Below, one piece after another: positions 1 to 51,550 of a DNA stretch of 64,000 nucleotides. The translations under genes and the position numbers were made by a program. This stretch comes from Takakia lepidozioides. Lineage: Eukaryota > Plantae > Bryophyta. Under the pieces are notes generated by a model. The model had not been told where the DNA came from. It saw only the letters and a list, made by a program, of their open reading frames with translations, and ran no database searches. The stretch is taken from contig CM060734.1 in assembly GCA_030704615.1 (NCBI GenBank), forward strand, positions 9,672,001-9,736,000, in the 5' to 3' direction. The stretch's first letter is position 1; each line of letters starts with the position of its first letter.

Positions 1-230
1 ATGCACAGCAGGGGCGCGGGATGGAGGCCTTGGAGACGTATGAGCAATTGATGGGGGAAGGGTGTGAGTGCAACCACATCACGTTTGTGTGCGTTTGCAA
101 CTGTTGTGCAACTGGCAGCCCTGGAAAAGGGCAAAGAGGCGCATGGTGACATCACCAAAGCTGGAATTTTACCAGATGTGATTCTGAACAATACCCTCAT
201 GGACATGTATGCCAAATGTGGGTCCACCGA
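1..230 (+). pseudogene. PLS-class pentatricopeptide repeat (PPR) gene fragment, frameshifted and truncated
   Basis: Frame 3 reads AQQGRGMEALETYEQLMGEGCECNHITFVCV, then a frameshift near 110 gives LAALEKGKEAHGDITKAGILPDVILNNTLMDMYAKCGS (P-L-S motif consensus). Similarity stops abruptly at ~230. Confidence 0.85.
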
Positions 231-1702
231 ACGGGGATCACCGAGCATTTGGGTGGCATGGACCCAACAAACACACGCCGTGGGCCCAGCCAGAGTCTAG
301 TTTTTGTGTAGGATGGTGCTGGTTCTAGAGTACCGAAGTCAACGGCATTTGCCTTGGCCATACAACAATCCTTGTTTGAGGCGCGTCCACTGCAGAAGTC
401 GGTGCTGACTTCTGAGGTGAAATGCATCCACTGCGACATCTTCGCACTTGTTGAGCAGCGCATGGCAAACAAATCCACCATGAAGAGGTGGCCAGCGGAG
501 AGGGCAATGGTGGATGCGTTCATTGAACATCACAAGAAGAGGAGGGAGTCTGTGCGGGGGGGAATTTTCGAGTCGTCCATGAAGGAAGGTGCTGACCTTG
601 TCATTGTGGATATCCCATATGGGCAGATGGTGCAAAATTGCGGGGCAGAGGGTGTTGTGCCTGATTGGAATGTGCGGAAGCTTTCGCACATCAGCTCTAC
701 CATATCACTGGCAAATGCAATCACGGATGATGTGGGACGACTCCTCATTTTCTGCAAGGGTGACGGCAGGATGGAGATGGAGCTTCGACGGATAGTGAGC
801 AATGCGCCCTTTCGTTTTATGAAGAGGAAGTGGACCTGCATGAATGCCCTCCCGCTCCTGACAGGCAACGAGGAGCAGCCACAATGAACCCAAAACACCA
901 CCTCCTTCTCATATTTTTCATGTTCCATTCCCTTTGCATGTGGGAAGTCGCCACAGACTTCCCAAATGCCTGAATGGTGTTCTGATCACTTCCTGTTGTG
1001 GGGGATAGCTGCACAGACTTCTCACATACACAGCCATGTTTTCATGGAAGAGAGTAGATCATCCTAGCTGTTCCCAAATCCACTACTGGTTTTTTAATAG
1101 AGCAGTAGTGAGGTAGGTGAGCAGTTTGAATTTGGTCGGAGTCCAGGTCTTGATTGGGAAGTCGGTACAGACTTCCCAGAATAGTGTGGGATAGACTTAC
1201 TAGTGTGCGTTGAGGTAATTGGGTTTTGTGTGCAGACTAGGGTGTTCTATGCTTTTTTGCTGTTGAAGAGCCCGACATACACCTACTTACTTGGCCGGGA
1301 TGCCAAGAAACTCAATTTGGACTTCAATCCGGTGGACACCGACATTGTGCGGAATTTCGTCAGCAAAGACAGCTGTACACAAGACCTAATGGGACCTGGT
1401 TCAGAGGCGCCAGAGAAAAAAGTCCAATGTCCCTACAGACTTTTATGGAGATGCTGACTGACGTTGGTGGCAAGATTGTCGACCTCACTGCAAACTGTGG
1501 CGCATCGATAGTGCTGGCACGGGTTTGTGGTCACCACTTACTGGCCTTGGAAGGCGATGGAGAGCTTGTAAGAGAGAAACTCATGGGCCTGCAATGTGAC
1601 ATGCCTGCTACCCCAGATCCCATGGCCGCAATGGACTTGACACCTGATGAGTGGTTCAGGGAATCTGGTGACCAAGCTGTGCATGTCCATGTATTGGAGT
1701 GA
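231..1702 (+). pseudogene. Beta-class N6-adenine/N4-cytosine DNA methyltransferase-like gene, degenerate
   Basis: Motifs in beta-class order: VKCIHCDIF, ADLVIVDIPYG (591-633, DPPY-like motif IV), GRLLIF, RKWTC, FYAFLLLKS, then after a frameshift at ~1380 RGAREKSPMSLQTFMEMLTDVGGKIVDLTANCGASIVLARVCGHHLLALEGD, which matches the KP..L...T..GD.VLDPF.GSGT...A...GR...G.E.D block. Stops at 309 and 885; probable intron ~890-1240. Confidence 0.7.
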
Positions 1703-2084
1703 GTAAGTTTGATGTTCCTGTCGTTCATTTTTTTTAAATTGGATAGTCGGCGCAGATTTGGCAATTCTTCTTTGCTCTCCTTGCGTGCCATGGCTGACCA
1801 TGGTTTCATTTCCTACTGCAGTGATGATATTCCCTCAATTTGCACAAGGAGGCCAGCTCCAACGACGCCAGATGCTCGCCGTGCTGCCTCGTTAATGGCT
1901 GCACGTCAGGAGAGAGAAAAGCGGAGGGCACATATTTCCGAGAAGAGGGTAGAGCTTCATTGAAAGGCAGCTGCTATTCTCTTTACCCCACCCAAACCTC
2001 TGTGTCTTCCTGAGTATGCAGCAAAGATGGCAGAAAGGCTAGCTCAGCAGGAGTCCCCCGAATTGTCGAAGAGGCCAATGTGGC

Positions 2085-3742
2085 CAGGTGAACGAATGTG
2101 ACTGGTGCACGAATACCGCGCCACGTGGCATGCCACGAGCGACCGCTCAATCGCGGCCGTTGGCGACCGTGATATCCGCGCTAATCTCTGCATTCTCTGG
2201 GGTGTTGGAAAGGTGGGAATACTCCGCCAGTATGTCATCCGTTATCTCCCAAAATGACTCATGTGCCATGAACTCGACAAGGGCCTCCCGTGTCAATTTC
2301 ATCCAATTTGTGTCTCGTTTGTTGAGGCACTTCAGGTACACCTTTTCGGACAGTGAATTCTTGTACTGCTCGACTGGAGTTGTTGCGCATAGCTCGAAAT
2401 AGTAAAGCTTGTGTGCTAGGTCTGACTTCACATTGCCCTCTTTTGTCACCCTGCATAACAACAATGGAGTAAGCACAGGGACAACAGGGTGGAAGAATGG
2501 GTAGTTGGTGCAGACTTCCCACACTATGGCAGTCCACAAAATAGAAAAAGCACCATCACATGCAGTGCCACATCAACTCTTGGGAAGTCGGTCCAGACTA
2601 TTCACTGCCATTGCATAGCTCTGCTTGGGTAGTCGGCACACACTACTCGAGCAGAGAAGCTTACCATGAAACAAAATGAAATAGTATGATACAACATGTA
2701 GCGTGATACAGCATGATACAGACTGAGACAACATAAGTCGGCACAGACTTCTGAGCACACTCACTGGGCCTGGGAAATCGGCACAGACTCCCCACATCCT
2801 GCAGTCGAAGTAATTGCCAGGAAATGTTTGCTCCTGAGCAGACCTCTACATGACTTACGACAGAAACAATGCTCATATGAGCAGACTATGAAGAAGCGTG
2901 AGCAGTCTTACACATTCATGCGATTCATGGCCCTTCTGACCAAGGCGATGTCCTCTTGTTTCACATCCAGAATCTTGGCATTGACTACATAGTGTCATTT
3001 CGGGGTCGTCCGCATGCTGCTCTGTTATGACCTCCATCCACGCCAAGTAGCGGTGGTTGCCGTCATAGATGTAGAGCCATTTGTTGCTCAAAAACTCCCA
3101 CATGGTGCCTTTGATGGCATCCTCAAAGCACAGGTCCTCCTCCTGCCAGTGAATGTCCCAGGTCACTCTATCCTCGGGCGTGATGGTGGAAACCATTCTA
3201 GCAGTGTTGCTCATTGCAAGCAGAAAGGACGCAAGGGCGTTGTTGTACCCATCTCCCTCGAAAAAGAGCTTCAACTTCTTTATCCCGAGCCTTTCAGCTC
3301 GCCAAATTGCAGGAAGTGTCCTCATCCTACACAATGGAACATGTGGAGGGTGGCCTTTTTGGAGAAGATGCAAAATGGAGCTATAGGTGTGGTTCAGGGC
3401 GCTGTCTCTCAACGTCTTTAGGGCTCTCTGCCGTCTCTCTGCAGTGAGCACCACATCTATGTCAGGTGCCGCTGGACCCCTTCCATGGTGACCCCTGTGC
3501 GAGCTCCCTGCTCCAGGCGAGGAGCGGTTTGATACCGACATGGGAGAGGTCGCAGACTTGTGCTGCCGAGACGACGGAGCAGATGCGTCTGCAAACCCAG
3601 ATTGCCCTTTCATGTGTTCCCCCGCGCCTTCCTGCTCCCGCGCGCCTGCTCGCTGCTCTGCGAATTGGAGACGATGGTACGGGTCCTCAGCACCATCTGC
3701 GAGGGTCTCTCCTGCTGAAAGTCGGGGTTGTCCTCGCTCCAT
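2085..3742 (-). pseudogene. ParB/Sulfiredoxin-like domain gene, at least 2 exons, degenerate
   Basis: HVPLCRM..P....I.KL...F..DGY followed by LYIYDGNHRYLAW (~3040-3078, ParB/Srx DGxHR signature). A frameshift plus TGA near 2995 restores HYVVNAKILDVKQEDIALVRRAMNRMN. A GT donor at 2911 and an AG acceptor at 2451 join in phase to VTKEGNVKSDLAHKLYY. Confidence 0.7.
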
Positions 3743-3966
3743 GGCTGCTCCAAAAAGCGGGAACTTCTCTCGGCAAGCGTTGCAACGTACTGCTGCAATC
3801 CACGAAGGGGCAGAAGGCTCGGATAGAGTGAACAATGAAGTGAAGGCGCAGCTGCGGAAGCAAAGAGGCTGTTTAGCGGAAGACACGAAACTGACGGCTT
3901 GGTGGAAGTCGCTTCGCGGTGACGCTTGGGGAAGATGCTTCGCGCACACACCTCTCACCACGTAGG

Positions 3967-4246
3967 CCCCAACGGATGCCTACGCGACACGTGCAGCGCC
4001 GAAAAATGCCACACTTGGCATCTGGAAACCGGTATGGATGGGAAGTCTATGCAGACTTCCCGGCTTATTTATCCCCAATGGGTGCCTACGCGACATGTGC
4101 TGCGCCGGAAAATGCCACACGGTGCGCCTGAAAACCGATCTTTCCGGGAAGTCTGTGCAGACTTCCCGGCTTATCTAACCCCAACGGGTGCCTATGCGAC
4201 ACGTGCAGTGCCGAAAAATGCCACACGGTGCGCCTGAAAACCGATC
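3967..4246. repeat. ~106-bp tandem repeat, ~2.6 copies, upstream of the ParB-like gene
   Basis: CCCCAAYGGRTGCCTAYGCGACAYGTGC..CGCCGRAAAATGCCACAC starts at ~3967, ~4073 and ~4178. Each spacer holds a GGGAAGTC-N6-GACTTCCC palindrome. Confidence 0.9.
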
Positions 4247-5343
4247 TTAGAAAATAAACAGATGGCATGGGAGACAAAAAAACGCTAAGTCCCCTCTGCT
4301 CATGACTGGATGGATGAATGGATATATGGATGAATTTTGTTTTTATCCATCCATTCATGAGTAGATTTATTGAAGCTCTCAAATGACATCCATCCATCCA
4401 TCCATTTTAATTTCATCCATTCATCTTTAAGTGAGTTTCACTGTCAATTGACTACAACTAACTACTGCCAAAATAAGAGACGTTCGACATCACTATGTGC
4501 TTGTTTCAGATTGACAACGTTCTTCTTTAAAAAAAAGGCCTAATCCCTTGCAAGTAAACTCATCCCAGATATGAATGATAGCATTAAACTACATTCATGC
4601 AACCAAATCATCCACAATACTTGCCACCTGTCATTCTCACACATGTACGTGTCCTAAGAGTGTGACTTACTCTACACTGGTGTGAGAGAAGTCTTGGTCA
4701 ATAAGCATAGTTATACAGTTGACTTGAGTCCCTTAATCAACGTGTCCTACGAATGTGGCATAATCCACAACAGTGTAAGATAAGCCCAGTAACATTTCTC
4801 ACACCATGTCTAGTCAGTATGCCACATCATATAGTTGATCCCCATTGTGTGAATTAACTTACACTATGTGGCTCATTCTCACACTGGTGTGAGTTAAGCC
4901 TTGTACACTGTTCGACACCTTTTCAGTCAATGACCGTTGACCACAGAAGGTGTGAGCTTGGTATAGACTAGTCTACACCAGACAGCTTTTTTTACACTGG
5001 CTCAATCTACACCATCAAAATTTTACAGGGGTGTCAAATTTGGTGTAAGTAAAGCCAGGTGTGAACTACCCTTGATGTAAAAAAAAAACCAGTTTCTCTT
5101 GTAGTGAAGTGCTCATTCTTAGAGCTGTAAGCACTGAAGTCATCTAAGAACACTTGCATGAAATCATCAAGAAACTCATGGAAAGATGCACTGATCACTC
5201 TCTGGAAAGTTGCTGGTGCATTATGTCGATCAATTTTTCAGATCATAATTTAGAATAGCATATTTTATGTACATTAATATATATTTTATGAAGTTTAGTA
5301 CGAAATCATAGTAAGAAATCATAAATAAAATGGAATTCTAGCA

Positions 5344-5892
5344 ATGGCAGAGCCGGAGGACCAGTCGAAGGACAACTCCTTGATTCCGGGATTGACAGAC
5401 CATATGATACTAAAATGCGTTGCACGGGTGCCTCCTTGTTATTATTTACCGTTGAAAGGTGGTTGTAAGAAATGGCAGAATGCGCTACCGGTGGTTAATG
5501 ACGAAGGCCGCAACGACGTCCTTGAGACTCACAAACGGGTAGGGATCAAGGAGGAATGGGTTTACATGTTGGCTGGTTTTGCACACAATGTACAGCCTCT
5601 CATAAGTGCACGGAAGTGGTGGGCGTTTGATTCCATCAGTACGCGTTGGCGTTGTCTGCCAGACTACCCTGTGGATTATACCTTTGAAGTTTCTGACAAT
5701 GAGTTGGCAGTTACAGGAGGACAGTACCCTAGAGGCTACATGATATGGAGGTATGATCTAGAAATCAATGAAGAGTCTCCAGCGCCAAGAATGATTCAGG
5801 ATCGATGTCTTTGTAAGTTAGCAAATGCAGGAAAGTATGCTATCTTGCTGGAGGATCTCACCAGCAGACGACTAGCACGAAAAGAAAGATAA
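5344..5892 (+). pseudogene. F-box/kelch-repeat protein, truncated
   Basis: SLIPGLTDHMILKCVARVP (plant F-box start), EEWVYML, WWAFDSISTRWRCLP and IWRYD...APRMIQDRC kelch motifs. It ends after ~2 repeats, next to a retroelement fragment. Confidence 0.8.
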
Positions 5893-5902
5893 AAAGACTA
5901 AG

Positions 5903-6220
5903 CTATGACTCAGAATCAGCTGTCTGCATACGAGATTGAGCAACTCGAATTGGTGTGAAGATCACCTGTCTATTCTCCACATTGAGACAAGTCAAGTCAA
6001 ATGTTAGTGTGCAGGGAACTAACAGAGAAACATGCACAGTGCTAGCAAGAATAGGTGTAGAGACATGCTGAGGAAGCAAAGCATATTGCCTACCAGAAAG
6101 GATCTCAGTAATCAAGTAGGGACCATCGATTCTCCGCTTGGCTTTAGAAACCTGCTTACCTGGCTGCAATCTTACACAAACTGACTGCCCAACCTTAAAA
6201 GATTCGGAACTTGGGGGCAC
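5903..6220 (-). mobile_element. Ty3/Gypsy integrase C-terminal (GPY/F module) remnant
   Basis: FKVGQSVCVR...SKAKRRIDGPYLITEIL...YAL...VHVSLLVP matches the GPY/F module consensus. Confidence 0.75.
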
Positions 6221-6630: not shown

Positions 6631-8298
6631 AAAGAAGTAGCCCTTGTGACGAAGTGACACCATAAGTTACGCTCCCTACGGGAGGCGTCATACTTTACTT
6701 TACTTTTTGGTTTGCCCTTGATAAATTATCAAAGATTTGGTGTGGAATCTCACTTTGAACATTAAACAGATGCAGAGAGGAAAGGGACATTGTCAATGCC
6801 CGATGTGCAAGAGGCTTGAAGAAAGTTTCCATTTTCTGATACACAGTCCTGGGTATTTTCATCAGAGTGACGCTCTTGAGGATCATCAAGACCTTAGTCA
6901 CTGCACTCTGTTCATCAACTAGGACAGTTTCTGAACTTAATCTACAGTTTCAACCTTCGCAAGGTCCAATTATGTTCAAAACCTACCGTTGAGAATTCCT
7001 CTCCAAAAAGATTTCGTGCGCCTTTGCTGCCACTGTTGGAGTCCAACTTGACTCTCAGCTGGCAGAGAATGCATTCAATTTTTCAATACATGAATGTGAT
7101 TTGGTATAAATCTTTTTTAAATAAGTCCAACTGCAACCTGTTAGAAAAGAAAGTTATTGACTGCTCTCAAAGGTGGGCCCCCATTCACCTATGATAGCAC
7201 ATTCCCCCACACCTGCTACATCCAAACTGGATGTGGTTTACAGCCTTGTGGCTACAAGATAACTCCTAAATGTGGGTCTCTAGTTTCTTCTTTCTTCCTC
7301 TTACACACACTATGCACTCATCTGGGCAAAGCTACCTGTGAGTCTAATTCACTGTTGCAAGGGGTTATCTTTTGACTGAAAGGCTATCTTGAAAGATTCA
7401 CCTAAACTCTCACTGCATCTTTCATGGAGAAGCTAGAGCCTTAAGCTGTGGCCTCCCTTAGGTCTGAATTATAGTGTGCACGCTCGCATCCCACTGAAGC
7501 TAACTGTGAAAGAGTAAGAAAACACGGAAGACCAGAATAAACATCAGTACTGATGTTCAGTTCCAATCACTGGCGTGCGGGCGTTCCCATGGTAGAGGAT
7601 CCGTTCACTCTCCCCTGTCCAAACCAGGGCTGCGGCAATCAAAGTTCAAAAAACTCTCTCACATTACTTGCAATAGCTCTTGAATTCCATACATGGGATA
7701 AGAATCTCCAGTCCCAATTGCTAATTATTAGGAGAAGGATGACACCCAAGCAAGCCTTCCCTCGACAATGTAGTCTACTGCCTCCCCCCACCACACATAC
7801 ACCTCCCAAAAGGATCTGTTGGGAAAAACACGATATCAACATGCTGCTGCGGCTACTGGCTTATAGCTTTAAAGAGCTACCCACTTGAGAGCCACAGTCA
7901 ACTACACACCCAACATACTTCAAAACTGGCTTGCAGGGTTGCTTCCTTTGTGATCCTTCTCCTTGACTTGCAAACCCTCTATATGGTTAGAGCAAGCTAA
8001 CAGATCCCAGCTACAATATGGGAAGTTTAGGCACAAATGGTTTCTTTATATAACCTTTTCTCAAAATAGAAAACTCTCTATGCGTCTGGCAGTTGGAGAT
8101 CCCAAAAATGAGGGAATGATTCTCCCATTGCAAGCCTACACACAGAAGACCCGCCTTGCCAGTCACAAAACTCACATCTTCGCGCCGCTCCTCAAAGACA
8201 ATCACCTGTCAATAGACTTGGGGTTGAGATATTACAATCTTGAACTCCAGCTTGGTTTCAATTTGCGGTCCGCCATGGAGGTGCAACTGTCAACCCCT

Positions 8299-10378: not shown

Positions 10379-13300
10379 CCCTTAAGCGCCCATTCGACCC
10401 GTTTTTCGGCCGTTGTTTTGGTTTTCCCCTCTGTTTTTCTCAGATTTGAACCGATTAACCTGATTTTTGGAGGGTAGGATGCCAGCCACATGGCAGTCAG
10501 GATTCCAACGCGCGATTAGGTTTTTTTTTGGTTAGGGTTGCAATTTTTGGCTGCAGCAGGAGGTGGGGTCTGCTTCTGCAGCGATTTTGGCTTGCTCCCG
10601 CGTTTTCAGCGTCGTCTCTCTCCTTCCCGTGCTTTGCCTTGTGCTGTGATCTCGTCTGTTGTGGCGTTTGCGCGTGTTCCATACTTTGTTGCAGGTTGCC
10701 GTTGCAGATGCCTTGACAGGTTGCCGTTGGTGGTCTGCTCCGATTGCATCTTCCATTATCTCTTTCTCTTTCAGTTGAGGAAACTTGGAAATTGTGGCAC
10801 CGCTACAGAGACTGAGCCATAGCTGTGAGAGAGGATGGGTCGGCTTTGCATTGATACTCAGGGTGCGCATTCAAGGCAATGTTCATTGTTTGATACCTGA
10901 GCTAGACTATGCGCAGTTAGGGCATCGTGTAGCTCATCTTTGTGTTTATCCTTGTGTGCATATGCAAATTTGTGGATGAAGGTTGAAGCTACATAGTATA
11001 AGATGGGTTCGGGTGTGTTGCCTCCCCCTGCACCTGCGCATTTGGAGACTCAAGCTGCATCGTTGCCAAGTGGGCACGCTCACTGGGCGCATCAACCGAG
11101 CAAGTCGAGCGGATTGTCGGGTGCCTGAATGAGGACTACCTCTTGTGTTTGAAGAGACCTGCTCGTGTGCGTTGGCCTGGATTTCCACAGCCCTCCAACT
11201 TTCGTTACTTGTTTAGGCGCCATTGTGCAGAGATTTTGGGTTGGGTAGATCGCAAGGAGGAAGGAGACCCTCTTGGGTTCAGCGCAGAGGTCAACGACAT
11301 TTTGAGGCTCGAGGTTTGGCCTGACTTCCAAACGTCTTCTGCCAGCCACGATGAGGCTCAAACAACTGGCCAGGGAGAGAGGTAATCGTATTGAACCCTC
11401 TTTTGATTTCATGAGTGAGGAGATGGGCAATTCGACCTACTCCTTGCGCAACTCTCAAAATCCGCTATGTGATCCTGCTGGTCACTCCCAAACTATGGAG
11501 GACATAGGGATTTTGGGATCCACAGTGAAGGTGGCAGTGGCTGAGCTGCACCTTCAGGATGTGGCATCGTCTAGCAATGCCCACGAATTTGGATATGGCA
11601 CTGTGGTAGACAAGACATGGAACATCCTGAATGGTACAAAAAATTATACTGTCTCTTTTTTTGGTGTCCTTGGTGTTCATGTGGTATCGTCACAATCCTG
11701 TGTTGTGTGTAATCTTGATGATTCAATGTTGTGCACTATCCCTGAGCTCTTGGGGTTGGATTCTGAAGCTGAATTGCCTGAGGGGGAAGTAGATGATAGT
11801 GAATCAGATTCTGATTGTGACTATAATCCAGAAGATGATGACCTTGTTGACATCGACAATCCTGACTTGATGGACTACTGTGTTGACACGGGGAATCCAA
11901 CGCGTGAGGTGGGATTATATGATTTGCCGCCCAATTGGGAGCAGTGGAGTCCTGCTGAGTTGTTTGGTGATGACATGTGGAACTCCTCTGCTACTGAATT
12001 GCCAGACATTACATGGTTAGGTGGGGATTCGGGTCCTCGTTTGCCTTTTGGAGATTCAGCAAATCCAGTTGATTTTTTCAATTTGTTTTGGCCACTATCG
12101 GTCATGCGCCGAATTTGTAGCATGACCAACTTGTATGCCAGGACAGAAAACCAGAATGGAAACCTGAAAGGAGGTAGATGGTGGTACCCTATCACCATCC
12201 GTGAATTGAAGGCTTGGCTTGCTGTTCACATGCTCATGGGAATCAAAAAATTGCCTAGTACTAGATTGTATTGGAAAGCCAACAATGTCTTCTTCAATTG
12301 CCCTTCCATCATGCGCATTATGTCCCGCAACCGATGGGAGGCAATTCTGAGGTGCCTCCACCTTGTTGACAATAAGGATGTATGCACTATTGACACTGAC
12401 CCTGCTTTTGATAAGTTAGCTAAAACCAGGTGGTTGCTACATGCACTAAATGGTTTGTATGCCACCTACATGAGCCCCGAGCAGAATTTGAATGTGGATG
12501 AGCAAATGGTGAAGTACAAGGGCAAATATGCCCGAATCCAGCAATACCTGAGCAAGAAGCCTGTGCAGTGGGGTCTGAAGGTGTGGTGTTTGTGTGGTGC
12601 ATGTTCCAAATATGTTCAGAAGTTAGAGGTTTACCTTGGGAAGGATGATGGGAATGATATGACCCATGGTAGTGGATATGGCGTGGTGACAAGGTTACTA
12701 GAAGGATTTGAGGGTAAGGGCCATATTGTAACGATGGATAATTTTTTCAGTAGCCCCATCCTGTTCTATGATTTGGCAGCAAAACAGATCTATGCTACTG
12801 GCACGGTAAAAACCTCCCGATTGGGTTTTCTTACGTGCCTTGATTTGGGGAAGAAGGGTGAGAGAGGTAGGCTGGAATATCGTGTTCACATAAGTGGCAA
12901 AGTAGCCGCTATTGCCTGGATGGATGCCAAGTTGGTGACCATGATTTCCACTGCCATTTCCCCTGTCAGTCCTGATTGCTTCATACAAAGATGGCACAAA
13001 GGGGCAAGACGTGATGTGCCTACCTCCCCTATTGTGGTTCATTACCAGCAGCATATGCGGATCAGCTACGGGGTTACTACTCTGTTCAGACCAGGGACCA
13101 TAAATGGTGGCACCGCTTGTACTTTCATGGAGTTGACACTTCTTTGGTGAATGCTTACATATTGTACCTGGGTTTTATGAGGGGAAAGGGCCACATTCCT
13201 CTTAGCCACATGCTTTTCAATTTGGAGGTTGCAAAGGGACTAATTGTGGGGTGAGTTCCTCCCAGGAGAACAGTAATGCCAGGGGCAGATGTGCCCAACC

Positions 13301-14469: not shown

Positions 14470-15117
14470 TTAAGGGGAAGCAACCGACTCCCCAACCCAC
14501 TTAGCCGGTTGGTTCTCAAAACGAGGGGCCATTGGCTGGTTCAACTGAAATTATTTTCCGGACGCTGTTCACACCTTCACTGCACTGCCCGCAAGTCAAA
14601 CCACACTCTCCTTCTCAACTTGTCAGCCACCCCTCGCTCTTTCGCATGCGTTGCCGACGATGATGGAAACACTTAGCCCCACCGCACGAGTCCACGCACC
14701 AACCCACCCTCTGATGCTTCTGGTGCCTTCCACTTTTTCTTCTTTCTTTCTTTTCCTTCGTAATAAGAAGCTTCCAATCCCTCGCCACGCACTGGCACGC
14801 GGGTTGATTCGTTTGATTCCTATAACACAAACATTCAGTCCGCACACACGTGTGTTCACGAACAAGTGTGCGTCACTCCATTCGCCCATCTCACACACCC
14901 GGATTTGCTCTCTCTTTTTTCTTTTGTTTTTTTTGGCCAAAGGGATTTGCTCTTCCAATGCCGTCCGACAGAATTGAAATCTCATAAAAAAAATGGAAGA
15001 TAATAGGAATAATGTAAGAACTTAATGCACATGTGCAAACTCTGACAGGATGGTACGCCGTTTTTGGACATGTCAAATCTCCCCACCCTCTCTTGAGAGT
15101 GACATGGAACTCCTGAG

Positions 15118-15262
15118 TGTAAACTCGAGTCGGGGTTACAATGGATTACACGACGAGGTGTGTAACTCCACTTGGGGTTACATCGGGTTACACGATGAGG
15201 TGTGTAACTCCACTCGGGGTTACACAGAACGGAGTACAACTTCTCTCGATGTAACTCACACT
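15118..15262. repeat. ~41-bp tandem repeat containing GGGTTACA/TGTAACTC inverted motifs
   Basis: GGGGTTACA..GGRTTACACGAYGAGGTGTGTAACTCCACT is repeated, with further GGTTACAC motifs out to ~15390. Probably a TE remnant. Confidence 0.7.
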
Positions 15263-21689: not shown

Positions 21690-24600
21690 TTACTTTGTCT
21701 TCCACCCATGTGCACGGGCGGCACGCTCATATGCGCCGTAAGCTTCGGCCTCCGGATATTCCTTTCCAGGTCTAGATCCATCTTTATCAATACGGCCCCC
21801 ACCTTCAACAAAAGCCATCACCACTTGAACAAGCAAGCTCTCAAACGAGCAAGCAGGGCTCCAACCACTGGCAGTCAAGAGTTCCATACAAATGCTGCCC
21901 CCAATAGTGACATGGCCTGTATGCATCATGAACCTAGGAGTAAGAACCCTCACGAAGGGAGGCTGGAAAGGGTAGTTTTCTGGAAATTTGATCTCCAGCT
22001 CAACATTGACATCCTCGTTTGCATTCCACTTCTTAGTGAGATCCATGAGATCTTTCATGATCGGGCTTTGTTTGAACAAAACCTGGTGGAGGCTCACCCG
22101 CCAGCAATAGATGTTACTCTCATCTGGAATATCAAGTGAGATCCCAACAAGCACTGGGACAACCTCATCAAGTCCCACAGATGCTGCCTTCGCCTGAGCC
22201 ATGGACTTCAGAAGACTCTTGTACTCCTGCATAATCGCCCGTGTTGCAGACAAGGTGGGGGTAGCATCTGCAAGCTTTCCTCTCTTTTCTCTGTGCAGCT
22301 GAGAGCTGGGTGTCCCTTTTTGCATATTTTCTGCAGCCTTCATGGGTAAGGTGCCTGTGCTGTCCATGTCCTGACCCAATTTTATCCTTCGGTTCTGATC
22401 AGCTATGGCCCGCAGGGCATTGCAGCGTGCCACCTTTCGGGCAGCTTGCTCTGCCAGCCGCCCCTCCTGATAGCTGTCACGGAGGCCCTGGTAATGACCA
22501 AAAAGATTGGTAGTTTGTGAGAGCATGTGCCCTTGGATGCTGGCATCTCCATGGACAACACTCCCTTGGAAAACCAAAAGATAACGAATTGCAACATCTG
22601 TTTGGAATTGTCGTGGAACGACAAGGATTTCGTGGTGACTTTGAGTCTGGGTGGCTTGGTTTGTACATCCCTCAACTATCTCACAGATTGCTAGACACTG
22701 GAACCCATCTCTGAGGCGACCATTAGCCCAGCCAGCCCCAGTTGCACGCGCATAGCTCATAGAAGTCATCATTTTGCGGGCAAAATAGATTCCCTCTCCA
22801 TATGCAGCCCCTGCTGACATGTAGATTGTGTTGCTCATGCAACGAAGTCCATTTCTGAATCCCAACCATCCAAGCCCACCCATAAATTGTCTTTGAGCCA
22901 GCACCCAGCTGAGAAGCTCACATGCAACAAAAAATCCAGTAACTTGGGTTCAGACAGATAAGAGAGACAAACAACACAACTCCAAAGAAATGATTGAAGA
23001 CCTGTGTATCAACAGAAGGCGATATACAAGGGTCCAGTAAGTCACACCTTAGAATGGAGTACCAATTGTCTGCTGAGCTTCCATGAAAGGCAAAGAAGGA
23101 GCCACCGGCTGCAGCACGCCGCTGCGCAAAGTGAGCCTCCTTCTCTGGACTGTCATGGAGCACTGCAAACTGGAATATGCAGTTGGGAAAGTTGAGCATC
23201 TGGTTTCCATCAAGAACCCGCAGTGATAGTCGGTTGGTAGTCAAAACAAACCGCATCACATCATATGCCAGCCATCGCTCCTTGGCCCAATCTGATACCT
23301 GCTGTGCACAAAGTGTGGTTTAACATCCAAGCACCCCTACAATACATTCCTCACATTTCAAACTCCCTCATGTTCTTCCCTCTCAGGCATTGGGGAACTT
23401 TGTGAATGTCATCTAGAGCCTTGTCTCTCTAAATCTTTGTGTCATTAACTAACCCTGACAACAAGTAAGAATGGGAGAAAAGGGTATACGAAATGAAGCA
23501 GACCTCTCCTAGTCTCTCTCCTTCCAAGGATTTCCTCGTGAACGAAGATTTGTCCAACATTTTCCAACCACAAGGTGGACACAGAACAAGATTTCTTCCT
23601 CTCAATCCCCTACCTTCCTGTGAGATCCAGAGAAGATACTAGTGTCTTCTTAGAGTTTCCTTGTCCCCAGCCAAGGCATCAAGTTATGAGGATCCGAAAT
23701 GCTTTGCTGTAATCAACAGTAGATTGAAAAAATCTGAATAATCCGATATACCTAGAGGTTTCCTACACGAGGCACTCCAACTTCATGCAACATCGGGGTT
23801 TGGTTTGTTCTTTGTTCCCAGAATGTCTGGCCTCCAATGAATGAGAAAAATTGGTCTCCTTCTACTTTTGAGCCATGAGCCCAATAGCTAGATAGAAGTG
23901 GTTGGTGGCCTACCTGAGGCTTCTGCTGCATACCCTGGGGGCCTTTCCCCTTGAGGCCTCGTTGGTACCAAGCTTTGGTCAAGATTTTCTTCAAGGCAAC
24001 CTCATCCGAGCACCGCTGGAGCTCTGTGGTTGGAGGGATGCTCCTCAGGACCCCTTTGAGCAGGTCCAGCTTCTTATTCACCAGCGGCGACTGGGTGTTG
24101 GCCTTTTGGCCATTACTAAACCAGCCACTGCGGCCTCGCATCTCAACTCTTGCTAATAAGAATGCTGGAAATGGCTCAAACACGTCCCGAGTGCTTATGG
24201 CTGCTGCTGATGCCAGTGAGAGCTCGAGGTCCACAAGCTCAGGAGACTTCTGGACTTCTTGGAGCACTGATGCTCCTAGGCCCAGTTCCTCAAACCGATA
24301 CAGACTGCACCCAAAGGTTTTTGCCACAGGAGAGAGCAGCACATAAGCATCAACCCACGTCATCAACCACTTAACACTACTTTCAAGCACCCCGGGTTGA
24401 GTGCTGCCTTACCAACAGCTGTCTCAGGTGGTAGATGGGGCACAAGATTTGCCCATGTGAGAATATATTGAGGAAGTCTCACAGCATGGAAGGCAACAAT
24501 AACCTATCATTCTTCAAACGTGTGCCATCTGAGGACAGTTGCAATAGATGGATCATAGCGGACACAAATGCAGAGCCAACCATGCAAACCTTACTTGGTG

Positions 24601-30411: not shown

Positions 30412-30839
30412 GGGCAACCACGTCCTCCAGCGCACTCGGAATGCGGCGATGTCTTGCACGTGGTCAGTGGGATCTGGCTCCTCTGCTGTAAACTGTCTTC
30501 ACTCAATATGGCGCCATATGCCTCCCTGTGGCGGCCCCTCTAGCGAATGGTGCGCCCATCAGATCAGCTTTTGGCGAAAAGTGATGATTTTTCAGCCTCA
30601 TTTCCCTTTACCCCCATCGCCAAGACCCGCGCGAGGTCGAAATCTGGCGATTATTCGCCACTAAGAGAATGGCTGCTTCCGGCACCCTCGTCGGTGAGCT
30701 GGACGTCCCATGTCAAATCATCCCCACCCCCCTCCGATCCCTCCGCCAACCCGCCCCCCCCCCCCCCCCGCCTGCTTGCCCCCCCCCCCTCACCCCCCAC
30801 GCTCGCCCCCGAACCCGCGAGCCCACCCCATCGAGCTCC

Positions 30840-31965
30840 CCCACCATCGATCCCCCAACCGTGCGCCCCCACGACCGCCCGATCTCCAGCCACGTGCCGC
30901 CCGCCCCCCCCCCCCCCCCTGTGGATCCCCTCATCCCTGGGTTCATCCCCCGTCAAGTGCCGGAGTGATCCCCCATCTCCTGCCACATGGTGCTCCCCCG
31001 AACCGTCGATCCCCTGCCCATCCATCCAACCTCAATAAAATGGATGATGTGGGTCATCCGCCCCTCATCCCCCGCCATACTCCCGCGCAGAGGATGGATG
31101 ACGAGCGGATGAAGGACCAATGACACTGCCACGCCACGTGGCGGTCCCCCCGCCGTCGATCCCCTCATCCCATCCACGGCATGATCCCCCGAGATGTCGT
31201 CGTTCCCCCTCCCTGGGTTGATCCCCCGTCCAGTGCGGGAGTGATCCCCCACCCCTAATCTGCAGCCACGTGGTGCTCCCCCGAACCGTCGATCCCCTGC
31301 ATATCCCTCCATCCTGAAAACAATGGATGATGTGGGTCATCCGCCCCTCATCCCCCCGCCATCCTCCCGCGCAGAGGATGGATGACGGGCGGATGAAGGG
31401 CCGATGACACTGCCACGCCACGTGGCGGTCCCCCGCCGTCGATCCCCTCATCCCATCCACGGCGCAATCCCCCAAGACGTCACCGTTCCCCTCCTGTTTT
31501 GATCCCCCGTCCAAGTGCGGGAGCGATCCCCCACCCCTAATCTGCAGCCACATGGTGCTCCCCCGAACCGTCGATCCCCTGCACATCCATCCAACTTGAA
31601 AACAATGGATGATGTGGGTCATCCGCCCCCAATCCCCCGCCATCCTCCGGCGCAGAGGATGGATGACGGGCGGATGAAGCGCCAATGACTCTGCCACGCC
31701 ACGTGGCGGTCCCCCCCGCCGTCGTTCCCCTGATCCCATCCACGGCGCGATCCCCCGAGACGTCACCGCTCCCCCCTCCCTGGGTTGATCCCCCACCCCT
31801 AATCTGCAGCCACGTGGTGCTCCCCCGAACCGTCGATCCCCTGCCCATCCATCCAACCTTAATAAAATGGATGATATGGGTCATCTGCCCCTCATCCCGG
31901 CACCATCCTCCCGCGCAGGGGATGGATGGCAGATGAAAGGCGGATGACACGACAGAGCCACGTGG

Positions 31966-32001
<36 letters not shown>

Positions 32002-32165
32002 CCGTCGATCCCCTCCGACTATCCATGGCGCGATCCCCCGAGCCGTCGCCGCTCCCCCCCTTGGTTGATCCCCCATCCAATGCGGGGAGTGATCCCCCTC
32101 CACTAATATGCCGCCACGTGGTGCCCCCCCGAACCGTCGATCCCCTGCGCATCCATCCAACCTGA
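30840..32165. repeat. GC-rich ~260-300-bp tandem repeat, ~5 units
   Basis: GCCACRTGGTGCTCCCCCGAACCGTCGATCCCCTGC anchors at 30982, 31265, 31547, 31809 and 32113, with long C runs. A related partial unit lies at ~35160-35380. Confidence 0.95.
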
Positions 32166-32984
32166 AAAGGGATTGCTGAAGCGTGAGCAGAATGAGCAAA
32201 AAATTCCGTGAGCAGAATTCTGCCCACGCTTCAGGATCTGCTCACCTATAACCGCGGACAACTGTTCGGCTTAGAGGACCTATTACTGCAGGTAGTGTCC
32301 AGTATAACATGCATACCGACAAGTCGTTATGGATGAATGATGGATGAATGATGGATGAATGGCCGATGAATGTATGTTGGACGAATGGCACATGGATGAA
32401 TGTAGTTTGTGGATGAATGGAAAATTAAAAAGCATTAGAGCTGCTCCTCCCCCTCCATCCCAAGAAAATGTCTTCTTGCATACTTGCAGGCATGGAACGA
32501 AGCCCCTGCAGGAGTGCAAATGGATCCATAAAATCATGTCAGAAGTCCAAACAGACGGCCAACATACATTGACTCCGCTAATGAAAGTGACCATGATCGG
32601 TCGCACCCCTTTCTGTGACCTTCCTATGTTGCATCATTTGTTCTATCTGAATTTGCTCGACCACATCACAAAGAGTCATTGCAATGGTATGTCTGAATGG
32701 CTACCTGACTGGGTCCAGATTAAGATGGCGTTGACGCCAGCTTAATTTCCACCCCTCTAAGCTCAAGGAAACTGATAAACAGAAAAGAAACACCACTGAA
32801 GTCTTACCGTCTGTTTGTGTATCTGTCTGTCTGTCTGTTTGTTTGTGTACATGTCTATCTGTCTACCTGTCTGTCTGGGTCTGGATTAAGATGGCGTTGA
32901 CGCCAGCCTAATCTCCACCCCTCTAAGCACAAGAAAATTGACAAACAGAAAAGCAGAAACCACTCAAGAACCTTGTCTGTCTGG

Positions 32985-46429: not shown

Positions 46430-47205
46430 CATCGCAAGGACCTGTCGCTTCTTCACAAGGTACCCCGGAAACAGAACATCTGTTTCTGGACACAGATAGT
46501 ATGATCCAGAAATACAACATTGTGAGGTCCAGTAAGATGCTAACAATCCGACTCAGCCCATACTTTGACTTCCCAAATATCCGTGGGTGATGCTGCAACT
46601 GCAGTAGCAACAATCACACTAAATGAAGGATATTCCTCTCTCAAAGACGTGACTTACAAGACCAGAAAAAATGCACCAAACTAGCTTGAAAAGGTCCACA
46701 GCTAAATGGAACTGAGAATGCACCACAAAATCAAAATGACCACCGCACAACTGGTAACAATGACCACATGTTGGGAGAGGTCTTAGTCAACACACCTAGA
46801 TCTCTGAAATGGCAGCGCCCTCCATGGCTGCAAGGGTAGGAATGAAGCGATGCATTTCACCATACAAGCGAAGATTTGATACCAATGAGGGCTGCAGCCA
46901 TAGTCATGCAGTTTAACTTGCATCCATCCCACTACCATGGGATTTGTTATCAACCATTTCTATAAAAATCAAGACGGGATATGAGAGAGGTGGTTGGGAT
47001 TACAATCCGACAATAAACATAAGGGGCAGCAACTGGTACCATGCGGAGGCAAGGCCTGGATATATCTGGATGGGACCAGCGCTCAAGGCTCTCCAAATTC
47101 AAGGCATACCACGATTTGTTTCCTACTTGAGTTCATGTCATCCAATTTTGTCATTGTGAAAAAAAAATCCTCTCATGGATGAACGGCTATTGCGCCCATT
47201 GAACC

Positions 47206-48837
47206 GATGTGGTTCAAGCTCATCTTTTGCTTGCATGTGCTTGAATGTGTGTGAAACACATGTGCAGAGATTCAACAGGAAAAAAAAACATTTGCCTCCC
47301 CAATGACGCACTCACCCTTGAACCAATTTTGAATTAAATCAAATTTAAATGAAATTTTAGTAGATAATTGGATTTAGAATGTCTATGATTGCGGATTTTT
47401 GCTAATCATATGCTATGATGTAGATGTGTCTTGAATCGCCCTATCTGATTCTAACAAAAAGCCCTCCAATCTTCACTTCATATTTTTAAAAATAGAAAAC
47501 AAACGACCGCCAATATGGCGGTTGCTTCAAATTTTTAAAATGAGAAAAAAAACGACCACCAATATGGCTTTATATTTATGAAATTAAAAATATAAGCGAC
47601 CACCAGTATGGCGGTCGTTTAATATTTTTTATATTAAAAAAAGGAGTGACCGTCAATTATGCGGTCACTTTATTTATTTTTATAAAAACTATGAAGCGAC
47701 CGCCAGTTTGGTGGTCGTTTTTTTTTATATATATTTCTAAAAGAAGCGACCTCCGCCGATGATGGTCGCTGGCATTTTCTAAAATACAAAATAGGTACGA
47801 CCGACCGACCGACCGACGCATGCTCAGGTGGGATGGTAGAGAGAAGCACAACATCCGATGATTTCGCTTTGTATAAAGCTTTGGCCTTATTTCAAAATCA
47901 ACATCAATCAAATATCAAATCATCAATTCATCAATTCATGAAATCATCAAATAAAAAATCACGGATGTGGTTCAAGCTCAACTTTTGCTTGCATGTGCTT
48001 GAATATGTGTGCAACATGCAGAGATTCAACACAAATTTTTATTTATTACATTTATTTAAAATAAATAAATAAATAAATAAACTCCCCAACGACGCACTCA
48101 TCCTTGAACCAATTTTGAATTAAATCAAATTTAGATGAAATTTTAGTAAATAATTGGATTTAGAATGTCTATGATTGCGGATTTTGCTAATCATATGATG
48201 TAGATGTGTTTTGAATTGCCCTAGATCTGATTCTGACAAGGAGCCATCCAATCTTCACTTCGGATTTTAAAAAATAGAAAACAAACGACCGCCAATATGG
48301 CGGTCGCTTCAAATTTTTTAAATGAGAGAAAAAGCGACTGCCAATATGGCTTTATATTTATGAAATTAAAAATACAAGGGACCGCCAGTATAGTGGTTGC
48401 TTAATATTTTTGAAATTAAAAAGAGAAGCGACCGTCAATTGTGCGGTCACTTTATTTTCTTTTTATAAAAACTATGAAGCGACTGCCAATTTGGCGGTCA
48501 CTTTATTTTATTTTTATTTGTAGAAGAAGCGACCCTGCCGATGATGGTCGCTGGTATTTTCTAAAATACAAAAAAGGTACGATCGACCGACCAATCGATC
48601 GATGCGCACATGCTCAGGTGGGATGGTAGCGAGAAGCATTACATCCGATGATTTCACTTTGTATAAAGCTTTGGCCTTATTTCAAAATCAACATCAAATT
48701 AAACATCAAATCATCAAATCATATCAAATCATCAATTCATCAACTCATCAAATAAAAAATCACGGATGTGGTTCAAGCTCAACTTTTGCCTGCATGTGCT
48801 TGAATATGTGTGCAACACATGTGCAGAGATTCAATAG

Positions 48838-48906
<69 letters not shown>

Positions 48907-49025
48907 AAAAACATTTATCTCCCCAACGACGCACTCACCCTTGAACCAATTTTCAGTTAATTCGAATTTAAATGAATTTTTAGTAAATAATTGGATTTGG
49001 AATGTCTATGATTGCGGATTTTTGC
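47206..49025. repeat. AT-rich ~760-800-bp tandem duplication (~2.3 copies) with internal GCGACCGCC/GGCGGTCGC hairpins
   Basis: GATGTGGTTCAAGCTC anchors at 47206, 47964 and 48765. The same hairpin motif occurs at 45240-45355, and further partial duplications at 49266-49450 and 49960-50060. Confidence 0.9.
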
Positions 49026-51550
49026 TACGTAATGATTTTATTTTTGGCTCAATTTTGTTCTGTGAATTCAACCCCCGTACCATTACATCCATACAAAAAA
49101 TTGGATCAAACAAAAATGAAAAAATAAATAAATAAAAATAAAATCTTCGCTCACTATTGCAGAACTCTCTAGGAAGAGTGCATGAATTTGAAGATAAATC
49201 AACTTTGGAACGCAAATGAGGGATGAAAATATGGTTTTGGGTCCAAATGGCTTTTGTTCACTTCAAAGAGAAGCACAACGACCGATGATTTCGCTTTGTA
49301 TAAAGATTTGACCTTATTTCAAAATCAACATCAAATCATCAAATCATCAATCATCTAATCATCTAATCAAATCATCAAATTATTTCTGGAGGAACAATCA
49401 ACACAACCAGCTTTGACATGAAACCCAATGCGTGTCTAATGAAATAATTAGCAAGCAATCCATCAACTCCACGAGTATACCACGATTTATTTTCTAATTT
49501 GAGTTCTACTCAAGGTAGAACTCAAGGGACTCGAGAGCTCTATTTGGCGGATGAAATATGATATGAAGGAGCCTCAGGAGTTCCTGAAATGTGCCATTGG
49601 GATGCACCTCGACAGCTACAAGGTGCAAGCCCAGGTGGTGGGGTCATCCAGATTACCCTTATTTCGAACCCAGTGAACATGGGACGTTCATGCAAACCAA
49701 GAGGCGAGGGTCACTGGAGCCACGGTGTTGTTGGAGATATGACGGCAGCCAAGCTACATTGTACAATTGACCGGGCCGAGTATATTTCAAATGATGGAAT
49801 CCGTTTGAACAGTGTTAAAATGATTGCGAGTTCGCAAGCATTGAAAACTCGTCCCCGCTCACAATGCTTCGCCTTCTGCATTTTCGTTGCCCGGACATTG
49901 CCCTACAAATTGTCGGTGTTCTTCTGGCTGCAAATGATGCTTGCAACCCCCACAATCATCAAATCATCAAATCAAATCATCAAATTGTTTCTGGAGGAAC
50001 AATCAACACAACCAGCTTTGGCATGAAACCCAATGCGTGTTTGATGAAACGATTAGCAAATTCAGTAGTTGCTCTGCTCCCTGTTCTACTTGTACAACAC
50101 ATTAATTCACTCACCAAGAAGCCGCCCGTGTAGGTCTTGGTCATGATGAGAATAACACTTCGGTTACTGGTTTTATGTACACGTGCAGCCTCAAGAGCCT
50201 TCACAGTGTTACCTGCTGGAACCTTTGGAGATACTTATGTCCTTGATGGTGGTAGCAGAACTCTAGGAACCTGGTCTATGAGAACCAATTCATGACTGAA
50301 TAACCAAATTTTGAAAATAAAGTTGGAATTCTGGCAATAAGACTTGGGGTCTTGGTACTGGTAATTCAAGCCTCTAATGTTGGCAAGTTTTGCTTATAGA
50401 CACTATCTTTAAAATCTTCTTAAGAAGAACGCCTCTAGTGCAACACTGCTAACTTGGTTGCCAAGAAACCTGCAACACATAAGGATAATGGTGGATTTGA
50501 CAGAATTAATGAATTGGTGACAGTTTGATTTTCATCAACTTCCAGGCTGACCTCAGAATGGTGCTCAGGTTGCTTCAATCCTCTGCTGCTCCCAAAATCA
50601 GCTCCAATGTCAATGAGGTCCTCTATCTCAGCACTTCGTCTCTTGGATTCTGGACTCAAACACCTTTGAGGGTTGAAAATTGCTGTGGGGTCAGTGAATC
50701 CTGCTCAGTATGACGAGCCAGAAGTTGGAAAGTTAAATTCTCAACAAGGGAGGCGCTTATTTCACACATGCCGCGACCCCATAGGCAAGTAAGGGTCAAA
50801 GGGAAAAAAAAACGAGGGCGCGGGCCCCAGTCCATTGCATCTGGTTGGCATCCCATACTAGCTACTTCCAAATGTTTCATTCCTAAGTTTGGAGCTTTTC
50901 TTCTGGCGGGAAATAGGTCTGTTCAAACTGACCCAGCCCGCGCACTGCTCTCAGGCCACGTGGCATAGGACTGCATCGTATGTTGGGTCCCGGGGACGTA
51001 ACCTACTGAGATGGGGCACGTGGTGGGTTCTAACCTAACACACTCATGAGCGAGGGAGCCTGCCTATCCGATGTGTGTGTTGGTGTGTGTGTGTGTGGTT
51101 GTCATTCTGATGCGGCGGGAAGAGGTGCCATCCCAGGGATTTGCTTGGTCACCATATTGTTCCCTGCTGTTTCAAGGCTGGAATTCCCGGCATGAGGATT
51201 GGGAAGGAGTGGCAAGATTTTATGTAGGCCATTGCTGTTTGTACATGCTGGGATTAGATATAGGCAGTTGCACACTCTGTTGTATGTTGTTCTCCGTACT
51301 TTGAATTCATGGTGTCCCGGAGCTTTGTAGTGTGGTCCATATCTAGAGAGTTGCTGTAAGGGAAAGGACGCGGGATTTAAGATAGGGACCTTCACCCTTT
51401 CCCTGGCGTTCCCAAGTAGAATTCTCAGCGTGAAAGGGTCGCTGTGATGGAGAGAAAGATGCGGGATTGAATTTGAGCGCCTGACTCAGTCCTTCCCCGT
51501 GCTCAGAAGTTTGCAACATCGGCTTTTTGAGGCTTAGAAATCCGTTTAAA

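Follow-up and report, generated by a model that had tools for sequence, protein, structure and literature searches.

Can a transposon of a land plant carry a gene whose product recognises, and perhaps modifies, the DNA of its own element? This question is raised by a locus of the bryophyte Takakia lepidozioides (assembly GCA_030704615.1, contig CM060734.1, positions 9,672,001 to 9,736,000 of the forward strand), a stretch of 64,000 nucleotides that is called the window here. In an earlier note, made from the sequence without database searches, positions 231-5106 of the window were read as a prokaryote-derived module of a ParB/Srx-like gene and a beta-class DNA amino-methyltransferase gene, carried as cargo by a plant CACTA transposon. 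A transposon protein that recognises its own DNA, and perhaps alters the chromatin there, would be an unusual counter to host silencing, and so far such proteins are predicted only, and in algae only.

The answer given by the present analysis is that window 223-4248 is probably an internal piece, decayed and rearranged, of an accessory gene that is carried by a cut-and-paste DNA transposon family of seed-free plants. The fragment is part of a multi-copy element and lacks the element ends. It contains a spliced part resembling beta-class DNA methyltransferases on the + strand, a ParB/Srx-like part on the - strand and a 22-bp palindrome that is repeated in about ten copies (Table 1). In contigs of public runs from the same organism, sequence at least 80% identical over 395-4137 reaches about 10-20 times the depth of a single contig; the other copies in the Takakia genome are known from this contig coverage alone, and they match the window from about position 250 onward. 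As regards the CACTA sequence, it is more likely a fragment of a separate element, which came to lie here through nesting and deletion in a region dense in repeats, than the carrier of the two parts.

The two coding parts and their family

In the methyltransferase-like gene, motif IV stands before motifs X and I on one strand, as the earlier note had described, and the exons of the relatives follow the same order, which is the permuted order of the beta class. Kinship with this class is indicated by profile A5, an alignment of the motif X-I-II region made with exons from the fetched loci, including the exon of the window. Its best matches in the PDB were CcrM (E 8.9e-4) and DpnA (0.002), followed by 9c3u and 8urk (unnamed beta-class enzymes), MboIIA (0.055) and TTHA0409 (2zie, 0.059). 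Since beta-class DNA amino-methyltransferases fill the first seven places, with alignments that cover the QKP...GD-VLD...G...GR...E block, the relation of the C-terminal half to the bacterial beta-class DNA methyltransferases is supported at the level of sequence profiles, and with it this claim of the earlier note.

Several other signals stayed below threshold but point the same way: AviRa at the D-I-P-Y-G stretch (E 0.005), the phrog_67 DNA methyltransferase (E 0.015) and the PADLOC type II methyltransferase MTase_II (E 0.039, twice). Amino-methyltransferase families also appear among the language-model neighbours of this part. The scans against Pfam, NCBIfam, PHROG and PADLOC were carried out with the exons one at a time, and no family passed its threshold on single exons. 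The Pfam check suggested in the earlier note thus yielded neither PF01555 nor PF02195 at threshold; the pieces of the window gave no PF01555 match, and the exon of a relative gave one below threshold (profile positions 163-194, E 0.05, 14 bits against a gathering cut-off of 26.7). Single exons compared with the PDB by phmmer gave nothing relevant, and nothing was found in two metagenome scans or by tblastn of the exons against phage genomes.

An exhaustive representative search with the first methyltransferase-like exon returned four short relatives and one spurious repeat protein, and a profile of these short relatives found 332 exon-sized family members. Columns W105, N106 and N164 of the 312-884 exon are invariant and many others are nearly so. 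By tblastn the exon matches L006 and L012 with E values from 1e-12 to 5e-7, the L-numbers being used here for fetched contigs that encode family members; in the script comparisons, stop codons in the relatives' pieces were replaced by X. The basic C-terminal tail of the last exon has a comparable counterpart in L004.

The motif IV of the family deserves attention, since the earlier note had taken the DIPY of this copy as a catalytic motif of the DPPY type, with possible self-marking by N6-methyladenine (6mA) or N4-methylcytosine (4mC). The stretch is indeed present in the window. However, D-I-P-E-G is found in 44 of the 52 family members, position 2 is I, L or V and never P, and the tyrosine of D-I-P-Y-G occurs in one member out of 52, the dead copy of this window, with no other aromatic residue at position 4. 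The canonical (D/N/S)-P-P-(Y/F/W) motif does not occur among these 52 members. DIPY was therefore rejected as the mark of an active N6-adenine enzyme, and with D-I-P-E-G as the family consensus both the activity and the self-marking with 6mA or 4mC become doubtful. Motif I reads D-x-T-A-(S/N)-(T/C)-G-A-S in the family, so that of the glycines of F-x-G-x-G the second alone is retained, and the acidic residue of motif II is also retained. The family thus derives from methyltransferases but lacks the canonical catalytic tetrad.

The ParB-like part corresponds to an open reading frame (ORF) of 362 codons (2873-3961) with a GT-AG intron, and here the earlier description of an intron-containing gene with D-G-N-H-R was correct. 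The signature follows a hydrophobic strand, in the context Y-I-Y-D-G-N-H-R-Y-L-A-W; the relatives have F-(I/V)-C-D-G-N-H-(H/K/R), and L013 has N-G-N-R. Two blocks upstream of D-G-N-H-(R/K/H), one with P-L-C-R-M and one with G-Y, are conserved together with the signature between the window and relatives at about 25-30% identity, and the order of these blocks resembles, by eye, that of the ParB N-terminal domain. In tblastn searches the first exon matches L012 (E 2.8e-10) and L006 (about 1e-4), and the second exon matches L012 at 7990-8181 (E 4.7e-5). The label ParB/Srx-like is plausible at the level of motifs. A weak match to phrog_1033, a ParB-like partition protein, was obtained (E 0.08), and word-indexed protein searches with the ORF gave no match. 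The nearest language-model family of the ParB-like ORF (2996-3499, - strand) is DUF3723, represented by fungal clusters (score 0.95, 171 shared features). Genes of this type, which have no known function, recur as accessory genes in the giant Starship transposons of fungi.

Among the relatives, ten pairs of the methyltransferase exon gave dN/dS values of 0.19-0.48 and one pair of the ParB exon gave 0.22, from which it follows that the protein has been under purifying selection. Contigs of a run that we guess to be RNA are 89-93% identical to window 645-808, in the methyltransferase-like part, and 2906-3057, in the ParB-like part, a hint that there is transcription of some members of the family. 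Elsewhere in the window, beside a C-rich repeat block, this gene family has left a second, tiny relic, which comes from another subfamily: it is a remnant of 23 residues at 32438-32506 (- strand) that shares 61% identity with the motif-II exon of the L006-type methyltransferase-like gene (E about 3e-6).

Layout, palindromes and state of this copy

Both members of the gene pair described in the earlier note are present in the window, on opposite strands and tail to tail, with their ends about 50-190 bp apart. The relatives are arranged otherwise. In all five contigs that have both parts (L006, L012, L013, L016 and L017) the ParB and methyltransferase exons are on one strand. Thus, in L012 the first ParB exon, the second ParB exon and the methyltransferase exon (E 4.5e-7) of the window match one strand in that order, with about 2.2-2.6 kb between the ParB exon and the methyltransferase exon downstream of it, and in L006, L013, L016 and L017 a chain of about ten exons runs along a single strand. 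A conserved gene of 453 residues, with a Cys/His-rich N-terminus and a core like that of DDE transposases, stands head-to-head with this chain in L006/L010, L016 and L017, and it is also found close to the chain in L013 and L014, while in L012 it is its C-terminal exon that lies nearby.

The intact layout would then be one spliced gene, with an N-terminal ParB/Srx-like part, linker exons and a C-terminal domain resembling beta-class amino-methyltransferases, preceded by a family-specific palindrome array and facing a transposase-like gene head-to-head. Since the halves are tail to tail here and on one strand in the relatives, the copy of the window is considered rearranged. It retains a 5' piece on the - strand (array and ParB exons 1 and 2) and a 3' piece on the + strand (methyltransferase exons), the middle exons being absent; no counterpart of the relatives' linker exons could be detected in the window. 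The most economical explanation of the tail-to-tail layout is an inversion with a deletion, or the joining of two truncated copies.

In L012, the region directly downstream of the ParB-methyltransferase gene contains a PIF/Harbinger-type DDE_Tnp_4 fragment (12114-12329, +) and a Myb/SANT-like gene (14811-15152, -), and transposon pieces from other superfamilies are common around these genes.

The two halves of the fragment share a palindrome of 22 bp, formed by GGGAAGTC, four bases and CAGACTTCCC. With up to 3 mismatches it occurs in 7 places, giving 13 matches on both strands where 0.03 are expected, and about three more degenerate copies bring the number to about ten sites, all of them within 942-4167 and all non-coding. 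As single strands these sites form far better hairpins than shuffled controls do (z-scores from -4.8 to -5.8). The presence of the same palindrome in both gene halves shows that both come from one element family. L006 has an array at 3900-4980, upstream of its ParB exon, with a palindrome of its own (AGCCGTCG, two to four bases, CGACGGCT) which also occurs near position 178 of L013 and position 5897 of L014. The palindrome-array design is therefore kept, while the sequence of the palindrome differs between lineages.

These features suggest a mechanism for intact members. The ParB-like part would recognise the palindromes of its own element, as ParB does with parS, and would thereby bring the methyltransferase-like part to the element's own DNA. 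Recognition of the palindromes is proposed from their association with the gene. The methyltransferase-like part keeps much of the motifs of the S-adenosylmethionine (SAM) pocket, with D-I-P-E-G in place of (D/N/S)-P-P-(Y/F/W), and it may either work as an enzyme of a non-canonical kind or do no more than bind DNA or SAM. Plausibly, the element would gain self-recognition or protection from host silencing. Such a mechanism is beyond the ability of the copy in the window, which is dead, as the earlier note had stated: each half has one frameshift (near 1392-1397 in the methyltransferase-like part, revealed by comparison with the relatives, and near 2985-2995 in the ParB-like part), the upstream (5') exons of the methyltransferase-like gene are gone and the parts are rearranged. 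After the frameshift of the ParB-like part, the reading aligns residue by residue with the relatives (alignment A3), and this confirms the shift.

Both outer borders of 223-4248 are breakpoints. The left one, at 222/223, lies inside an intron of the methyltransferase-like gene, so that the edge at 231 given in the earlier note has to be moved to 223, the homology to pentatricopeptide repeat (PPR) paralogues stopping at 222. The PPR fragment on its left is covered by very many paralogous contigs, which share a sequence that no longer follows the window beyond 222; the fragment contains indels when compared with these paralogues and extends beyond the start of the window. On the right, the palindrome array stops in the middle of a unit at 4248, just short of the next palindrome, and another copy in the genome carries on there (joint of 4248 to 4041). 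A single insertion covering 231-5106 was rejected as well, because the sequences flanking 223-5106, a PPR fragment and a retroelement fragment, are mutually unrelated.

Cargo, capture or neighbouring elements

The CACTA terminus reported in the earlier note is present: CACTACAAGAGAAAC, on the - strand and ending at 5106, which resembles the terminus of En/Spm. The homology of high-copy retroelement-like sequence breaks exactly at 5107, and the terminus is therefore real and inserted into a retroelement (the adjoining piece of 54 residues, at 5107-5230, had no Pfam match). The CACTA piece measures 858 bp and includes some 500 bp of short subterminal repeats, which extend inward from the terminus and start from about 4600. 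It is read as a neighbour of the fragment because the end stands alone (no second end in the 64 kb with up to 3 mismatches), no palindromes are found in it, the GC content falls from 0.53 in the bin 2001-4000 to 0.42 in the bin 4001-6000, the array is cut mid-unit at the junction, the terminus is absent from all 15 loci of relatives that this check covered, and the flanks are unrelated. No other copy of 4249-5106 was found within the window.

The cargo claim of the earlier note was not upheld by these data, the fragment having no ends of its own, and it is unlikely that the window holds the right end of a true EnSpm/CACTA element, its left part lost, which carried two convergent genes and an array inside it, in the way that the red-algal Plavaka elements carry the PAG2/PAG3 cassette. 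Some observations do agree with it. Seen from the CACTA terminus, which is genuine, the cassette is on the inner side; the contigs over 4335-4728 add up to a depth similar in order to that found for the cassette; and the red-algal cassettes consist of two genes, have inverted-repeat arrays by the ParB-like gene and move between superfamilies, Plavaka among them. The stops of the two genes are about 50-190 bp apart, as could be expected of genes that are naturally convergent, and a good splice donor is not seen where ParB exon 2 ends. Nevertheless, the left border falls inside an intron beside an unrelated PPR fragment, the methyltransferase gene lacks its upstream exons, another copy continues the array beyond 4248, and the five relatives with both parts are collinear beside a different transposase-like gene. 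Besides, no ORF for a TnpD-like CACTA transposase is present in 223-5106, and there is none among those window ORFs of at least 170 codons that were scanned, ten in number, where the only transposase is piggyBac-like.

Several points weigh against the preferred reading, that of a rearranged fragment of a collinear gene. The relatives are distant, with 24-33% protein identity to the window, and the lineage of the window could differ from them in layout, with two convergent genes, or in carrier. Two convergent genes could be natural in this lineage, given that both end in stops and that the second ParB exon has no good donor. It is quite unlikely that the parts were split in this way and then taken up by a CACTA/EnSpm element in this plant lineage; if it were true, the self-recognition cassette would be exchanged between transposon superfamilies in land plants too. 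The identity of the neighbouring 453-residue gene is another weak point, as Pfam and PDB searches with it gave no match and we infer the label of Mutator-type (GCM-MULE-SWIM) transposase from its sequence. The N-terminal half of the methyltransferase-like part is in a similar position: profiles A1 and A4 (52 sequences) found no methyltransferase in the PDB.

The capture of gene fragments by plant CACTA elements is established, and a non-autonomous CACTA element might have taken up a dead PPR piece and two ParB-methyltransferase pieces as cargo without function. The breakpoints, rather than ends, on both sides of the fragment, the unrelated PPR pseudogene piece with its indels directly adjoining, and the mixed orientation of the pieces would fit such passive capture. 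On the other hand, ordinary nesting and deletion in a repeat-rich region give the same picture, the PPR fragment runs off the start of the window, and the left CACTA end, if there is one, lies beyond the window, so that no element can be delimited. We consider this origin rather improbable.

It is very improbable that the ORFs resemble ParB and methyltransferases by chance alone. The methyltransferase side has in its favour the seven beta-class enzymes that head the A5 matches, and the hundreds of members of the family show conserved columns, with dN/dS values much lower than 1. Between distant relatives, conservation of the ParB-like exon extends along its length. The possibility of chance motifs is open only for the ParB label. 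No Pfam family reached threshold on any piece, and the ParB-like pieces gave no ParB match; D-G-x-H-R is expected by chance about once in the six-frame translation of 64 kb (an estimate); no ParB turned up in the PDB, whether the ParB-like sequence or profile A3 served as the query, and what A3 matched best was the BRCT domain of XRCC1 (E 0.02), unrelated and taken as chance. The structure prediction that the earlier note had recommended was of no help, as the AlphaFold model of the ParB exon alone was unusable (pLDDT 42) and that of the methyltransferase exon with 5 sequences too poor for use (pLDDT 41). What stands of the spliced, transposon-linked ParB-methyltransferase module is a joined multi-copy family in the relatives, its ParB half unconfirmed beyond the motif.

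Known systems and other features of the window

The concept of this family is already described for algal transposons: accessory genes with ParB-like and DNA-methyltransferase parts were published in 2025 (PMC12477816; bioRxiv 10.1101/2025.02.11.637652). In the brown alga Ectocarpus, Sola1-1_Ec32 encodes a ParB-like part and a prokaryote-type N4C/N6A methyltransferase in one protein, on the strand opposite to the transposase, and its authors proposed that the accessory protein binds and modifies its own element (PMC12477816). As described, it resembles the present family in that one transposon-borne protein has both parts. The carrier in the brown alga is a Sola1 element, whereas the copy studied here comes from a seed-free land plant and is broken and rearranged; its relatives lie beside another kind of transposase-like gene, and the catalytic loop is D-I-P-E-G.

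In red algae, the PAG2/PAG3 cassette is found in Plavaka (of the EnSpm/CACTA superfamily), Mutator, Zisupton and Fanzor elements (bioRxiv 10.1101/2025.02.11.637652). It shares with the present family a PF01555-type methylase, a ParB-like gene and tandem inverted-repeat arrays by the latter, and it moves between superfamilies; its ParB call is also weak (HHpred E 0.29; bioRxiv 10.1101/2025.02.11.637652). However, PAG2 and PAG3 are separate genes, the former with a SET domain and the latter with a 2OG-oxygenase-like domain, neither of which is seen here, and the relatives of the window have one collinear gene. Two features of the cassette recur in our material: the ParB-like and PF01555-like parts beside a transposase, which applies to the relatives as there is no transposase inside the window fragment, and the inverted-repeat array beside the ParB-like gene, at 3967-4248 of the window and 3900-4980 of L006.

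Other systems are more distant. Fusions of ParB-HTH with Dam-type methyltransferases in chlorophytes and chytrids, and methyltransferases of phage ParB-terminase loci, have been described (Iyer et al., PMC4738411). Here too, ParB is found in eukaryotes together with a methyltransferase, for adenine or of the amino type, that stems from prokaryotes or phages, but these enzymes belong to the M.EcoKI/TaqI-like 'chlorophyte Dam' group (PMC4738411). The present family instead aligns with CcrM, DpnA and MboIIA and has lost the canonical motif IV. The bacterial PF01555 enzymes (CcrM, DpnA, MboIIA, M.RsrI, M.PvuII) have motif IV before X/I and the QKP...GD-VLD...G...GR-x-x-x-x-E block in common with it; the differences are that the present family lies under the Pfam threshold, has D-I-P-E-G and one motif I glycine, is spliced and is transposon-borne. 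N4CMT of bdelloid rotifers is likewise a bacterial PF01555-type methyltransferase gained by a eukaryote and tied to transposon biology, although it belongs to the host, has a chromodomain and a catalytic motif that works, and helps to silence transposons (PMC8885841). The gene described here is owned by the transposon, and its motif is non-canonical. A functional analogy may be drawn with VANC of the Arabidopsis VANDAL (Mutator-like) elements, an accessory protein that opposes silencing and recognises short repeats in the element that encodes it; the proteins are unrelated, and VANC has no ParB-like or methyltransferase-like domain.

A literature search found no description of such accessory genes for land plants. 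The window alone adds little, as its copy is dead and rearranged and its link with CACTA probably accidental. What the analysis sharpens is the picture of the land-plant family, with the true relation of its methyltransferase half to the bacterial beta class, D-I-P-E-G throughout the family, purifying selection and a layout conserved despite different palindromes. It is also a warning that 'DIPY' and 'next to CACTA' mislead when they are read from single copies. The coordinates of the features are collected in Table 1.

Table 1. Features in and around the fragment at window 223-4248, with positions given in the window.
Feature	Position	Strand	Remarks
PPR (PLS-type) pseudogene fragment	1..222	+	ORFs end ...MYAKCGS; context only, outside the element
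Intron remnant before the first retained exon	223..311	+	polypyrimidine tract and AG acceptor 311/312
Methyltransferase-like exon, N-terminal half of the domain	312..884	+	ORF 354-884; motif-IV-like D-I-P-Y-G 609-623
Intron with palindromes	885..1235	+	acceptor 1235/1236; donor unrecognisable in this copy
Methyltransferase-like exon with motifs X, I and II	1236..1698	+	motifs 1412-1558, from translations and alignment A5: R-E-K-S-P 1412-1426, motif-I-like stretch 1478-1507, L-A-L-E-G-D stretch 1541-1558; frameshift ~1392-1397
GT-AG intron	1699..1821	+	donor GTGAGT at 1699, acceptor 1821/1822
Last methyltransferase-like exon, basic tail	1822..1963	+	stop 1961-1963
ParB-like second exon	2147..2450	-	stop 2147-2149
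ParB-like intron	2451..2911	-	GT-AG; donor GTAAGA at 2911, acceptor 2451/2450
ParB/Srx-like first exon	2912..3742	-	ATG 3742; D-G-N-H-R 3050-3064 (ending at 3050); frameshift ~2985-2995
Palindromes in the methyltransferase intron	942-963, 1156-1177, ~1002-1023		three sites, the last one degenerate
Palindromes in the ParB intron	2499-2520, 2582-2603, 2772-2793, ~2630, ~2735		five sites, the last two degenerate
Tandem array	3967..4248	.	2.7 units x 106 bp; palindromes 4040-4061 and 4146-4167; directly upstream of the ParB-like gene
CACTA-type terminal fragment	4249..5106	-	terminus 5089-5106; probably outside the ParB-methyltransferase element
High-copy fragment, retrotransposon reverse-transcriptase-like by eye	5107..5230	-	ORF ...FLDDFSAYS...; very high contig depth

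Further features were observed in the rest of the window. At 11351-13147 (+) there is an uninterrupted ORF of 599 codons with a piggyBac-type transposase domain (PF13843, E 4e-66), which may represent an intact element or a domesticated gene. The region 21690-24390 (-) encodes PARP catalytic, ARTD15 N-terminal, RWD and ubiquitin-conjugating-enzyme-like domains, which probably belong to a host gene of the type PARP6/8 plus UBC-like. Tandem repeats of about 283 bp, very rich in C on the + strand and with long poly-C runs, occupy 30700-32200 (GC 0.59, GC skew -0.31). Finally, about three tandem units of about 790 bp are found at 47100-49350, and within them are short inverted repeats (GCGACCGCCA...TGGCGGTCGC) as well as a tract of (AT)n.

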